A stretch of 61,406 bases of DNA, the filler included, from Choristocarpus tenellus KU-1152 (lineage: Eukaryota; Protista; Phaeophyceae): assembly GCA_964200185.2 (NCBI GenBank). It is 8 parts of 8 records of this genome, joined end to end, with 100 filler letters (N's around TTAATTAATTAA, not from the genome) between each part and the next. Parts side by side here need not be neighbours in the genome. Positions count along the whole stretch, not along the records: positions 56,470 to 61,406 come from CAXNAD020012462.1; 7 more parts are not named here. One strand, given 5' to 3'. Positions 56,370 to 61,406 of this stretch are shown piece after piece (positions within the stretch are counted from its first letter, which is position 1; every line of letters begins with the position of its first letter). A program made the translations under genes and the position numbers. Below the pieces are notes generated by a model. The model made no database searches. It was not told the DNA's origin and saw nothing but the letters and a program-made list of their open reading frames with translations.

Positions 56370-56470
56370 NNNNNNNNNNNNNNNNNNNNNNNNNNNNNNN
56401 NNNNNNNNNNNNNTTAATTAATTAANNNNNNNNNNNNNNNNNNNNNNNNNNNNNNNNNNNNNNNNNNNNA

Positions 56471-56740
56471 CGTGGTATCAAAGGGAAGAACATATTCACA
56501 AGAACACAGCTGGGTGAAGAGCTGCAGGCCTCTTACACGGAGGTTCCAGTCTACTGCAAGACCCTACGGAACGAGGGCAACTTCAAGGGACTCCTTCGCG
56601 GTCACGCCAACCGTGTTCCCAACATCACGAGCTACAGGGCCTTTCGCGTTGAAAAAGGCGGTGATGGGCGGGTTAAGGTTGGCGTAAAGCAATACATGCA
56701 CAGCACCGCATGGAATGGGATAGGCGCCAACGTTGCTATC
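56471..56740 (+). pseudogene. C-terminal segment of Sola/DUF7869-like transposase, cut by LTR
   Basis: Open frame without ATG, not in the ORF track: RGIKGKNIFTRTQLGEELQASYTEVPVYCKTLRNEGNFKGLLRGHANRVPNITSYRAFRVEKGGDGRVKVGVKQYMHSTAW. Resembles the post-catalytic region of these transposases. Confidence 0.6.
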
Positions 56741-56998
56741 TATGCAAAAGAGAACTACTCAAGTAGAGTATTTTGCTTTGTGTGGTATGGATATATGTTT
56801 ATTAGCGGAGTGAGCAGTGAGCACAGCCCTCGGTGGTGGGGGGTGCTCTCTCTTATAATCTTATTGTTTCTTACATATATCAGCTGACTCACATCAAATC
56901 GTGTCCTGCCGTTACATCGTACTATGTCACTTATCCTGTGTAGCTAGTACTATGTCAGAACTCCTCCAACAGTCCACTTATATCAAGTAATAAGAAAC

Positions 56999-57078
56999 CG
57001 AACATCTGAGATTCGAACTCATTACTTCACGCAGACGAACACAAGTCAATGACACTTGTTCCACTTAGCCAACATTCC
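56999..57078 (-). promoter_or_regulatory. tRNA-like sequence with Pol III A and B boxes in the 3' LTR
   Basis: Minus strand GGAATGT TG GCT AAGTGGAACA AGT ... TGCGTGAAGTA ATGAG TTCGAAT CTCAG ATGTTCG. A box TGGCTAAGTGG, B box GAGTTCGAATCTC, 6/7 acceptor-stem pairs counting G-U, and a long variable arm. The anticodon stem is poor. Confidence 0.7.
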
Positions 57079-57807
57079 TGTTGTTTCGTAATGTTCACTA
57101 AACACGTATAAACCATATAGACTATCAGTCTATATTGCACACTCCCCCATGAGCGTGCAGCAAAGTTGCTGGCAAAAGCTCACCCCCGACGCGAAAGCAC
57201 AGAATGTACAAAATCAGAAATGAAACTCTTGCGTAAAGACTTGGTTAACACGTTTGCCAATTGCTTGTGTGTTGGAATATACTTAAAGCCAAAAGTCCCC
57301 TTCTTCCATAACCTGGCATTTCCTTCTCCATGGCCTCCTGCTGCTGATCTGCATTTGGCCCACTCAAGGCCGCTTTGGTTTTAGATGGCTTTGCCTGCAC
57401 CTGTTGTTACTTCCCCATGATACCCACAAGGCAGTACATGTCTTTGTTGTTCTGCTGCATGATTGACACAAAGTGGTTCTGTCCTATCTTGGGAGAAATA
57501 TCTTGGCTTTGGGTGGATGTTGAGCGCTTTGCATCTTGAGCCCTACGTCCAATGTTTTGGCTCTCACCCCCAGTCTCGCTCCCTGTTGTGGAAGCCTCTT
57601 CTTCATCTCTCATATCCATGTTCATGTCGTCATGAAATTCTGGCTCCCCCAGTATGTCTAGCTCTGGCTCCCCCACTAACTCCAGCAGTTTGTCTTCAGG
57701 CTGGAAAGACACTTGTGCTGAGGTCACCAGCTTACCTAGACAGTGTCGCTCTCCTCTGGCGACAAACGATCTGAAGGTGTCCTTTACCTCCACAGTTGTT
57801 CCAGGAT

Positions 57808-58139
57808 GTGCTTATCACCATCGCTGCCTTTTTGTGGCCTGTCCCAGCAGGAACCACAAGGCCTCACGATGCCCTCGATAAATTTGCTCCTATTTGAGCC
57901 AGGCAGCCCTCCATTGGCTGATGTTACTCTCATGAGTGCTGATCACCATCGCTGCGCCCCTCCTTTTGTGACCTGTCCCAGCAGGAAACACAAGGCCTCG
58001 CGATGCCCTCCATAAATTTGCTCTTATTTGAGCCAGGCAGCCCTACATCGGTGCTGCTGTTACTCTCATGAGTGCTGATCACCATCGCTGGAGCCCCCCT
58101 TTTGTGGCCTGTCCCAGCAGGAAACACAAGGCCGCGCGA
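57808..58139. repeat. ~135-bp tandem repeat (2.5 copies) derived from gag
   Basis: Anchor gtcccagcaggaa at 57841, 57975 and 58111, and in gag at 58542. Confidence 0.9.
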
Positions 58140-58795
58140 CTTCCGGTGAGCTGCACGGGGATCTCTCGTCCTCCGTGCTTCCTTTGTCGAGCTGCATGGG
58201 GATCTCGTCCTCCATACGGACACACCTGCGCAAATACCTGCTGCATGTTGTCCCTGATGCCTATCAGAGCTCCTTTCTTGGCATGATCCTCTTTGGCTGC
58301 ATCCAGCTGCTCGTATTCAGTCCAGTTGTGATCAAGACGAATCACGAAATCTGCAGCGTCCTCCACTGACGAGCAGAATGTGTCTCGCAGCTTTATTTCA
58401 AGGGCAACAAGCTGCATAGGTCGCTGAATTGTAGCGTGCCCACCATATATTTGCTCTAGTTCGAGCCAGGTAGCCCTTCCATCAGGGTTACCATTGTTCT
58501 CGTGCGAGCTGACAATCATAGCTGCGGCACCTCTCGTGGCCAGTCCCAGCAGGAACCATAAGGCTTCTCGATGCCTAACGTATTCATCGTACACGCAGCG
58601 TTCTTCGAATGATGTGTCACCTGTGGGAGGTGCTGGAATGTAGTATGCAGGTTGAAGTATCCGGTACAGTCCTTTGCCGCCCGTGTAACTCACCAAAGCC
58701 AATCGCCATTCAGCCCACTTCTCCCGTGTATGCCCCCGTGCTCCACTCCAGAGTGGCAGCTTACGGGGGTCTGCTTCCATACCGCTGAGGCTCAT
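58079..58795 (-). CDS. Copia Gag (UBN2-like)
   Basis: ORF starts inside the PBS; contains KWAEWRLAL...GLY and DGRATWLELEQIYG, typical of copia gag. The C-terminus runs into the tandem gag repeats. Confidence 0.8.
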   Translation of the reverse strand: MSLSGMEADPRKLPLWSGARGHTREKWAEWRLALVSYTGGKGLYRILQPAYYIPAPPTGDTSFEERCVYDEYVRHREALWFLLGLATRGAAAMIVSSHENNGNPDGRATWLELEQIYGGHATIQRPMQLVALEIKLRDTFCSSVEDAADFVIRLDHNWTEYEQLDAAKEDHAKKGALIGIRDNMQQVFAQVCPYGGRDPHAARQRKHGGREIPVQLTGSRAALCFLLGQATKGGLQRW

Positions 58796-59070
58796 AACCT
58801 ATGCAAAAGAGAACTACTCAAGTGGAGTATTTTGCTTTGTGTGGTATGGATATGTTTATTTGCGGAGTGAGCACAGCCCTCGGTGGTGGGGGGTGCTCTC
58901 TCTTATTATCTTGTTGTTATTACATATATCATGACTCATCAGCTGACACATCAAAACGTGTCATGGCGTTTCATCGTACTATGTCACTTATCTTGTGTAG
59001 CTATATCTTGTGTAGCTAGTACTATGTCAAAACTCCTCCAACAATCCCTTCATATCTACTAATAAGAAAT

Positions 59071-59150
59071 CAACCATCTGATATTCGAACTCACTACTTT
59101 ACACACACGAACAGATATCAATGACAATTGTTCCACTTAGTCAACATTCC
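59071..59150 (-). promoter_or_regulatory. Second, more degenerate tRNA-like copy in the 5' LTR
   Basis: GGAATGTTGACTAAGTGG...GTGAGTTCGAATATCAGATGGTTG, collinear with 56999-57078. Confidence 0.6.
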
Positions 59151-59152
59151 TG

Positions 59153-61343
59153 ATTCCCCACGTGATCGAGGCTGTTGTCGTACTTGTCGATAAGCCTTGT
59201 GAGGGCAAGGTGGGTGGCTGTGCAGACAAGGTTACAACCTGCGTGAACGATGATGTCTGTCGTTAGTTGGCAAATAGTACTCTGCTTACTTACGCATTGT
59301 ATATTTGGAGCTAAAAAGAGGGGTAATGGAATGTGTTTTTGTGATGTAGAGCACATACACCCGACTGGCTGATATACATGTGTGTGGGTTTCCCTCCTCC
59401 GTTGATTAGCTCTTACGTTCCTCTCGCCCTAACCCTAAGCTGATGCGTACGATGGCAGGAGAGCACACGGCATAATCGGTTAATCGACTGTTCACTAGGG
59501 CTGCGGTATCTGTAGGCACATGGTGTAAGGATGTACTCGTCCTCAGGTATCTAACCTACGGCAGGTCCACTCGCCACGACGGAAAACCAAGTGGTGCGTG
59601 TACAACAATAATCTATTCAGTCATGTGATTGTTTGCCACGACCAACATTACGTACCTCCTCCAAGATTCATAGGAGTGAAGAACACCTCTGCGAACTGAC
59701 CTTCGACGTGTGCGGCCATGATTTTCTGTCGCTCGGAGTAGCCCCTGATAAGAAGGACAAGAATCGAAGAATCATCTAAGGAAAGGTTCTATGGTGCGTC
59801 GTCATCATGATGATCGGAATAGGTAGTGGAATTATGTGAGTATGTTTTGGCGGTTATTTCATGTGACTTTGCACTCATTCGTAGAATAAAACAGGGTCGT
59901 CTATTCTGTTCTACGTGCGGCTGCGGGCTTGTTGTCGGATGGACTATGCGTGCTTGTGGTTACCTGTCACCGCTGTGGGTAGGTGGGTAAAGTGCTGGGA
60001 GGGCGTGTGCTGTCTGGTTTGCGGCGTCTACGGACATGAACACGAACCCAAGAGGTTTACCGTCGGCTTTGGCCCGCATGGCGCTTCTTGTGCTGTTGGC
60101 GATGACCAGCCGATCCGCTTTGATAATCTGGGGAATGGGGGAGGGCAACATTACGTCTGTAAATCAAATAAATCTGCTCAGAGTTGTAAAAAGATGGCCA
60201 CTTGTTAACACGTATGAGGTTAGGAAGAAAATGGAGTATAGGTAAGAATAAATGTTTGTCTTTGGATATGTTTTTTAATGCTGCGTTCAATACAAACAGA
60301 GTATTATGGGGATTGTCGGAAGCACGTTTGTACGGGGCCTGAGAAGCCGCTACAGTACCTGTCCCTCCCACATCCCGTTGTAGACGACCAGGAAGCAGTC
60401 TATGATATAGCGTGTTTGGGCTGTTAATAAGAACGTTTTTGCGCTGAGTGAGGGTTAGGCTGCTGCCATTAGCACCTGCGTGGGAGTCTTCATTCGCAAA
60501 CGGAAACAGATGTTGAAAATGGAGGGCAATGGCGGCGACATGTTGCCACTGTACGCTTGTTGCAAAATTAATGCTGGACACATACCTCTCGATGTTCTGA
60601 CAGCTCCTTATCGATGGCCTCGAGGACGGTGGAGTCGTTCGTGGGTTTTACACCAGGCGCACCGTGACGCTTCTCTTTTAAGGTGACACATATGTCACAT
60701 TTCATAAACTCGCCTCCTACCCTCACCCTGATGTTGGGCCTCTCCTCTCTGAGCAACCGGAGGAAGTGCGCCTTGCTTACGCGCTTGGAAGGGTCGTCAG
60801 GATACACTCGTATTACCTCCTTGCAAAAATCCTTGTATAGATCCTAATTTAAGATGTTGGTTATGTGGGAAAGTGATGAGTTATGGAGAAGGAACACTCG
60901 AAGAACACCCCTGAAAGATCTCTCGGAGGCGGGCTGACCAATAACTTGACCCTACCAATGTCAGACTGGGACCGGGGCCACATAGTATGTGTACACGGCG
61001 TCGAAATAACAGTTACTGTGCCTTCCTCCGTAAAAGCGACGAAGAGTATCATCATCATTGTATCCTAGATATATGGAAACGAAAAAAATAGCCCTTGGTA
61101 CGAATCTTCATATGTTCTTTCAACCTTAATATCAGACCGGTTCAAGTAATGAACATCCTCCAACCCAGGATGCGGCCAACCTCTCCACCACCAAGGGCAA
61201 AACCTACCTGTTTGTTCGCGGCGTAGATCACAATTGTGGGCTTGTGAGGCATGAACTGCCCGTATGTATCAGCCCAGTAGTCTATCCAGGACATGACCAG
61301 GTATCGCTTCGGACCCATGTCCTTATCTTCCCTTGTGCCGTTC
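59153..61343 (-). CDS. Intron-containing Sola/DUF7869-like DDD transposase, N-terminal and central part, truncated at LTR
   Basis: Phase-compatible exons 61343-61208, 60843-60586, 60127-59964, 59744-59656, 59238-59153: SWIDYWADTYGQFMP...DLYKDF...HFLRLLREERPNIRV...FMKCDIC...EHRE-IIKADR...FMSVDAANQTAHALP...IMAAHVEG...NLGGGCNLVC. The motif order (W..G.MP, F.KC..C, H, first catalytic D, GxN) fits this family. Confidence 0.72.
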
Positions 61344-61406
61344 CTATTGTAGTACCGCACGTATGTATATAAATGGATGGGAGATGTGTTAGAGGTGGAT
61401 GTGGGG

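Follow-up and report, generated by a model that had tools for sequence, protein, structure and literature searches.

A gag-only, non-autonomous Ty1/copia element of the brown alga Choristocarpus tenellus, with a borderline tRNA-like patch in its long terminal repeats

Could a retrotransposon that still encodes a gag protein owe its transcription to a tRNA-like promoter within its long terminal repeats (LTRs)? The question is raised by a locus of Choristocarpus tenellus KU-1152 (assembly GCA_964200185.2), which lies in a stretch of 61,406 nucleotides, here called the window, composed of eight parts of eight records joined by filler. The initial annotation saw there, at 56741-59152, a gag-only copia element whose LTRs had captured a tRNA as an internal RNA polymerase III (Pol III) promoter or TFIIIC insulator. 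The piece analyzed is 56470-61406 (CAXNAD020012462.1), in which the element is on the minus strand, and what it holds is real but ordinary: a non-autonomous copia, decayed, in which one patch has a borderline likeness to a tRNA, too weak for the patch to be called tRNA-derived. It can be held with considerable confidence that the element is an old insertion of an internally deleted, non-autonomous Ty1/copia retrotransposon of a brown alga.

The anatomy is directly visible. Two direct repeats, 56740-57080 and 58799-59152, agree in 299 of 329 aligned columns (90.9%), and since all the coding remnants between them are on the minus strand, the element reads from right to left. What was found of the marks of Ty1/copia is gag homology, the order of the pol remnants, two LTRs, a primer binding site (PBS) after the 5' LTR and a polypurine tract (PPT) before the 3' LTR. 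The features are given below in their order of reading, with reference to two related contigs of Choristocarpus tenellus, CAXNAD020007834.1 (L003) and CAXNAD020015630.1 (L004), and to two more distant relatives of the element, L001 and L007.

58800-59152, minus strand: 5' LTR without its first 61 nucleotides (nt); direct repeat of 56741-57080, the 61 nt being present upstream of the 3' copy and in the L003 copy
58782-58799, minus strand: PBS, core GTTATGAGCCTC, complementary to an anticodon stem-loop with anticodon CAU
58082-58780, minus strand: gag open reading frame (ORF), its likely start the second Met at 58780; no zinc knuckle; copia gag homology to about 58172
57830-58139, minus strand: tandem repeat with a 134-bp unit in 2.3 copies, derived from gag 58437-58575; also in L003 and L004
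57668-57733, minus strand: remnant of the integrase end (end of the SH3-like domain), by tblastn to L001 3124-3180 and L007 2947-3012
57299-57391, minus strand: remnant of the reverse transcriptase (RT) N-terminus, split over two frames; its LWKKGTF motif aligns just before the RVT_2 start in the L001 pol
57183-57298, minus strand: remnant of the pol C-terminus (RNase H end), by tblastn, in frame with the RT start; stop codon 57182-57180
57142-57150, minus strand: likely PPT (ATGGGGGAG), read from the sequence directly before the start of the LTR homology to L003
56741-57141, minus strand: 3' LTR, full length, about 401 nt, start TGTGCAA and end TTGCATA, from the L003 comparison and the inverted termini

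The copia affinity is plainest in gag. The ORF as a whole has 238 codons (58795-58079, minus strand), and its first ATG (58793-58795) lies inside the PBS, where it is the complement of the CAU anticodon; because six phmmer matches begin at query residue 6, the real start is probably the Met at 58780, 15 nt downstream. Pfam gave no direct match to the ORF, an exact look-up gave no record, and a word-based protein search gave no match for the ORF, its N-terminal 95 residues or an ORF within the LTR. An exhaustive phmmer search found 80 relatives. Among them is P0004 (816 residues; expect value (E) 1e-28), with matches to Retrotran_gag_2 (above cut-off), Pol_BBD, gag_pre-integrs, rve and SH3_retrovirus, a predicted domain succession that is copia gag, then protease barrel, then integrase. 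Closest, at 62-66% identity, are protein fragments annotated in Discosporangium mesarthrocarpum and Choristocarpus tenellus, both Phaeoexplorer genomes (bioRxiv 10.1101/2024.02.19.579948). The portion of gag kept is its N-terminal two thirds, and the zinc knuckle that the ORF lacks is present in one relative, P0011.

Downstream of gag the remnants come in the order integrase end, RT start and RNase H end, which fits the copia order of protease, integrase, RT and RNase H, with integrase before RT. The SH3_retrovirus match of P0004 (residues 731-802) corresponds to L001 2947-3162, with the integrase-end match in L001 straddling its 3' edge, and an acidic linker separates the integrase-end remnant from that of the RT N-terminus. 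The RNase H remnant represents the last ~35 residues of pol; its matches are to the end of pol in L007 (E 2e-6) and in L001 (E 8e-4), in both cases with the next PBS and gag following closely downstream. Neither Pfam nor tblastn found protease, integrase core or RT as coding capacity in the element. Two claims of the initial annotation are thereby upheld: sequence comparisons confirm that PBS and gag were kept while protease, integrase core and most of RT were lost, and the attribution to a gag-only copia lineage is borne out by the P0004 homology and by the deleted layout in two contigs of the same species.

The PBS core, directly after the LTR end, is identical in L001, L003, L005, L006, L008 and L009. 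We take it to be of the tRNA-Met type, with copia-style half-tRNA priming by an internal part of the tRNA. The same type of PBS is reported for fungal Copia and Helenus elements (PMC10886601).

That the element propagated as a family is also direct from comparison. L003 and L004 match its internal region at 77-90% DNA identity and have its layout (~200 gag residues, the 134-bp repeats, and integrase, RT and RNase H remnants), and the frame split of the RT remnant is identical in L004. With this layout common to all three, the deletions and the frame split are older than the copies. Gag is the sole coding capacity found, and, with the same layout in L003 and L004, the element belongs to a gag-only family that spread in deleted form, much as the TR-GAG elements of plants. 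The family has kept the parts acting in cis (LTRs, the copia half-tRNA-Met PBS and PPT) plus the N-terminal two thirds of gag, and would have been copied in trans by the proteins of an autonomous copia.

More distant relatives (L001, L005-L009 and L018) all have the PBS, except L018; none of these contigs has an alignable LTR or a tRNA-like stretch. A scan with the LTR start pattern gave 0 matches in the JGI metagenomes and 0 in viral contigs. A conserved 18-mer had 8 metagenome matches, which were rejected as chance, each being limited to ~20-32 nt. Together with contig look-ups the metagenome and viral scans yielded no further LTR copies, and the LTR comparisons that follow cover three copies only, with L003 serving as outgroup for both of the window's LTRs. 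In L001 (382-757) and L007 (234-509, 4419-4700 and 8726-9000) the end of pol runs through one LTR directly into PBS and gag, and in L007 the whole unit is present three times at ~4.2-4.3 kb spacing; such single-LTR junctions are either true tandem arrays or an assembler's path through identical LTRs.

Where does the LTR begin? The initial annotation had the 3' LTR starting at 57080, which is off by 61 nt. These 61 nt (57141-57081) are homologous to L003 1515-1575, and the whole 3' LTR region to L003 1515-1928; the homology breaks at the identical base in both loci, CATGGGGGAG precedes that base in the window, and TGTGCAA, which together with the LTR end TTGCATA forms an imperfect inverted repeat, follows it. 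From this break the 3' LTR is 57141-56741, directly after a GGGGGAG tract, and the PPT 57150-57142, with CATGGGGGAG the likelier PPT. From the earlier LTR start it follows that the tRNA-like stretch is within U3 and that the 5' LTR is truncated. The alternative of an LTR starting with the stretch was rejected, the true start being at 57141. A target site duplication of 5 bp was sought and the flanks do not match, a test that says little given the 61-nt deletion of the 5' LTR.

Two further observations concern these 61 nt. At 59145-59157 the 5' LTR is broken at a GGAAT microhomology, no more than 2 nt from the 5' end of the tRNA-like stretch; the simplest explanation is a plain deletion, which leaves the coincidence with the edge of the stretch unexplained. 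Within the 61 nt of the 3' LTR is a perfect 9-bp hairpin (ATATAGACT / AGTCTATAT; 57110-57135, minus strand), kept in L003 1520-1545 with one stem pair weakened to G-T.

How good a tRNA is the tRNA-like stretch? The features on which this and the promoter question turn are:

56998-57078, minus strand: tRNA-like stretch of the 3' LTR, LTR positions ~64-144; A box 57071-57061, B box 57019-57009
59070-59150, minus strand: tRNA-like stretch of the 5' LTR; A-box-like 59143-59133 with 1 mismatch, B-box-like 59091-59081 with 3 mismatches
56798-56803, minus strand, twin 58855-58860: AATAAA motif, kept in all three LTR copies
56746-56749, minus strand, twin 58805-58808: run of four T (T4) near the LTR end, 5-8 nt before it, kept in all three LTR copies

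The 3' copy does have what was first described in it: a perfect match to the A box and, 52 nt away start to start, a near B box, a T arm of GAG / TTCGAAT / CTC and an acceptor stem with 6 of 7 positions paired, two of them as G-U. ARAGORN at default settings finds no tRNA in the piece, and an Rfam search of the whole piece gives nothing, neither tRNA nor 5S. When 121 nt were searched for each LTR, the 3' copy aligned with the tRNA family RF00005 over model positions 1-71 of 71 with a directly obtained but weak 17.6 bits against a gathering score of 29, its anticodon arm down to 3 pairs around a 20-nt insert; the 5' copy gave no reported tRNA match, nor did the L003 copy in its Rfam search, and 5S ribosomal RNA was also absent from the 3' and 5' copy searches. 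A tRNA gene would be expected to score at least 29 bits with RF00005 and to have an anticodon arm, and the 3' copy falls short. The extra bases interpreted initially as a class-II-like variable arm are put by the covariance model in the anticodon region instead. Folding z-scores of the two LTR copies (+0.39 and +1.24) mean less stable structures than those of shuffles, with no cloverleaf from either copy alone.

How often would such a likeness be met with by chance? The RF00005 match has a reported E of 0.16 for 121 nt x 4227 families. ARAGORN finds the 3' copy only when its threshold is lowered to 90%, and the 5' copy only at 80% and with a forced intron; in Markov-simulated sequence the 90% threshold gives 0.05 matches per piece or 0.65 per 61 kb, and at the same relaxed threshold there is an unrelated chance match in L005. 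An A box with up to 1 mismatch and a B box with up to 2 are expected 0.64 times per 61-kb window. The notion that the stretch is a second PBS or a product of primer read-through was also considered and rejected, since its tRNA sense is on the sense strand of the element and no TGG precedes it on the other strand.

Comparison with L003 bears on what the stretch was like at insertion. The G that perfects the A box is private to the 3' LTR, with A at that position in the 5' LTR and L003, and the A box of L003 is changed once more, at the first G of the GG pair; two of the three copies are mutated at G10 of the A box, and L003 at G18 as well. The C completing the G2-C71 pair is likewise private to the 3' LTR. 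Because of these two private bases the best-scoring copy is partly the product of post-insertion changes, and by the outgroup comparison the sequence at insertion would have been less tRNA-like than the present 3' copy. The 5' LTR has a broken B box; the 3' LTR and L003 have it intact, L003 in a form nearer to consensus. Identity in the stretch versus the rest of the LTR is 84.0% versus 93.1% for the 3' and 5' LTRs, 77.8% versus 80.6% for the 3' LTR and L003, and 75.3% versus 76.4% for the 5' LTR and L003. The prediction that the boxes would be more conserved than the remainder therefore leans towards refutation (84.0% versus 93.1% between the LTRs), as judged from three copies, and the tRNA capture proposed at the outset is possible, with one sub-threshold score in one of three copies and no conservation above that of the LTR remainder.

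If the stretch is to be a working promoter, where would its transcript end? Pol III terminates at runs of at least four T. The T4 run common to all three copies sits between the tRNA-like stretch and the PBS, so a transcript started at the stretch would end before the PBS; further T4 runs comprise two private to the 5' LTR and three in the internal region. About 50 nt upstream of AATAAA there is a TATA-like motif, TATAAG in the 3' LTR only and AATAAG in the other two copies, and TATA-like motif plus AATAAA would be the usual RNA polymerase II (Pol II) layout. With these motifs and a short U5 the LTR looks to be of the ordinary Pol II type, its transcription presumably by Pol II. The 81-nt U3 stretch, 64 nt from the LTR start and tRNA-like mainly at the A and B boxes, may be the decayed relic of a tRNA or tRNA-derived short interspersed nuclear element (SINE), or a chance likeness; in neither case would it be the promoter of the genomic RNA.

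Three explanations of the stretch compete. That it is a working internal Pol III promoter or TFIIIC insulator kept by selection, as first proposed, strikes us as very improbable, even with boxes at tRNA-like spacing, a B box intact in two of three copies, a 5' LTR break coinciding with the module start, and the precedent of Cassandra and Helenus (PMC10886601). Apart from the conserved T4 run before the PBS and three more within the element, the element is 2.4 kb long, twice the longest described LTR element of Pol III type (Helenus is 311-1263 bp; PMC10886601), two of three copies have the A box mutated at G10, the module is no better conserved than the LTR remainder, and the LTR has TATA-like and AATAAA motifs of its own; the T4 run before the PBS, the 2.4-kb length and these motifs leave the idea of an internal Pol III promoter driving the element unsupported. 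That an AT-rich U3 has come to look like a tRNA purely by chance, with ordinary LTR constraints behind the conservation of the first third, has to our minds just under an even chance. An A box with 1 mismatch (likely the state at insertion) and a B box with 2 are expected often enough per window, as is the ARAGORN match; folding is no better than that of shuffles; and other LTR blocks are equally or better conserved. It is less easily reconciled with an Infernal E that, rescaled to one family, is ~0.02 per window, or with acceptor, D and T helices that all pair in register.

Several observations weigh against dismissing the likeness as too weak. By our own rescaling to the tRNA family, the full-model match has an E of ~0.0015 for the piece and 0.02 per 61-kb window, and the expectation per window for a perfect A box at tRNA spacing from a B box with no more than 2 mismatches is 0.018. 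Over the three copies cloverleaf pairs form in 72% of cells versus 31-46% in slid controls, a comparison biased by the structure having been derived from one of the three, and the T stem shows a single compensatory change. Conservation of the A-box half is 88-91% (as invariant are several further 20-nt blocks in the LTR), the break in the 5' LTR at the edge of the stretch might point to a separate unit or to a start site, and just three LTR copies were compared. The full-length 17.6-bit alignment, the box statistics, the T-stem change and the pairing all speak for a true relic of a tRNA or tRNA-derived SINE in the U3 of the family ancestor, now decayed and without role, which is quite possible, if somewhat short of an even bet. 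A B box better in L003 and an A box better in the window's 3' LTR look like independent decay, the LTR is ~400 nt compared with ~240 nt in L001 and ~150 nt in L007, both without such a stretch, and insertions of this sort are the proposed origin of Helenus (PMC10886601); the relic could have arrived by insertion of a SINE, or by reverse transcription switching template to a packaged tRNA. Set against this are the two of three copies with no reported tRNA match, the unrecognizable anticodon arm, a best score owed partly to post-insertion changes, and the high false-positive rate of ARAGORN at the threshold needed, with its chance match in L005. A relic is compatible with the explanation favored here, an old non-autonomous copia with a borderline patch, and is one of its two branches.

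What would be at stake otherwise? A gag-encoding brown-algal copia family with a tRNA-derived U3 module still recruiting TFIIIC or Pol III would be, on the features above, a surprise that we scarcely expect. Were it so, stramenopiles would have their first Helenus-like LTR, which would also be the first in an LTR element that encodes protein, and the 5' LTR break at the module edge would be a real transcription start. A working tRNA-type promoter here would extend Pol III-type LTRs from tiny non-coding TRIMs (terminal-repeat retrotransposons of miniature size) to an element that is coding, as well as to a new supergroup of eukaryotes, and would bear on promoter swapping by LTR elements. The novelty initially claimed is reduced, tRNA-derived LTR sequences being already known in Helenus/TRIMp3 (PMC10886601), and the accompanying statement that they occur in oomycete elements finds no support in that paper. 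The value of the locus is rather that a gag-only copia family is documented in early-branching brown algae, that an LTR boundary is corrected, and that it illustrates how easily a sub-threshold tRNA likeness in one LTR copy is over-read.

The surroundings may be described briefly. In the left flank (56471-56700, plus strand) lies coding sequence for a DUF7869 domain's end (PF25273; E 3e-5, just under the cut-off), so the element is in or beside another repeat-like gene. The right flank (59144-61360, minus strand) has several ORF fragments, apparently separated by introns, one with the Cys-rich motif FMKCDICV; a Pfam search with them gave no match. In L008 (1-35) and L009 (minus strand) the contig end, ~490 nt upstream of the PBS, resembles by eye only the 5' third of a tRNA gene, with A box TGGTTCAGTGG, and a neighboring tRNA gene is a possible source.

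Among known systems, Cassandra resembles the present element in that small-RNA-like sequence is in the LTRs of a non-autonomous element. It differs in that Cassandra has 5S ribosomal RNA sequence, of which there is no match here; its Pol III promoter and terminator are conserved, and its transcription by Pol III is proven (as cited in PMC10886601). Helenus (Kojima 2024) comprises TRIMs with tRNA-derived LTR sequence from fungi, where they depend on Copia, six animal phyla and Selaginella, no stramenopile being among the hosts given; TRIMp3 was proposed there as a collective term, 'not a few' Repbase LTRs were said to resemble part of a tRNA, and the lengths of Helenus (311-1263 bp) and Cassandra (565-860 bp) were attributed to Pol III processivity (PMC10886601). 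Shared with Helenus are an A- and B-box stretch in both LTRs that is tRNA-like and not a functional tRNA, and a PBS complementary to the anticodon-loop region of Met-tRNA, as in fungal Helenus and its Copia partners. Helenus is short and non-coding, whereas the present element, at ~2.4 kb with a gag ORF of 233-238 residues, is outside that size range and coding, and Helenus boxes are conserved across families whereas here the tRNA score is sub-threshold in one copy and unreported in two.

With autonomous Ty1/copia of the Drosophila copia type, primed by half-tRNA-Met, the element shares its gag family, the order of its pol remnants, the type of PBS and the short inverted LTR termini; protease, integrase core, RT and RNase H are what it has lost by deletion. 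It also fits TR-GAG, the non-autonomous LTR retrotransposons of plants that encode only GAG (PMC13570524, PMC8704663). The host here is a brown alga and not a land plant, short dead remnants of integrase, RT and RNase H are retained, and downstream of gag, which has no zinc knuckle, comes a tandem repeat of gag sequence. Like TR-GAG, it combines LTRs, PBS and PPT with one gag-like ORF and lacks a working pol, and there are several copies with a shared deleted layout, which implies mobilization in trans.

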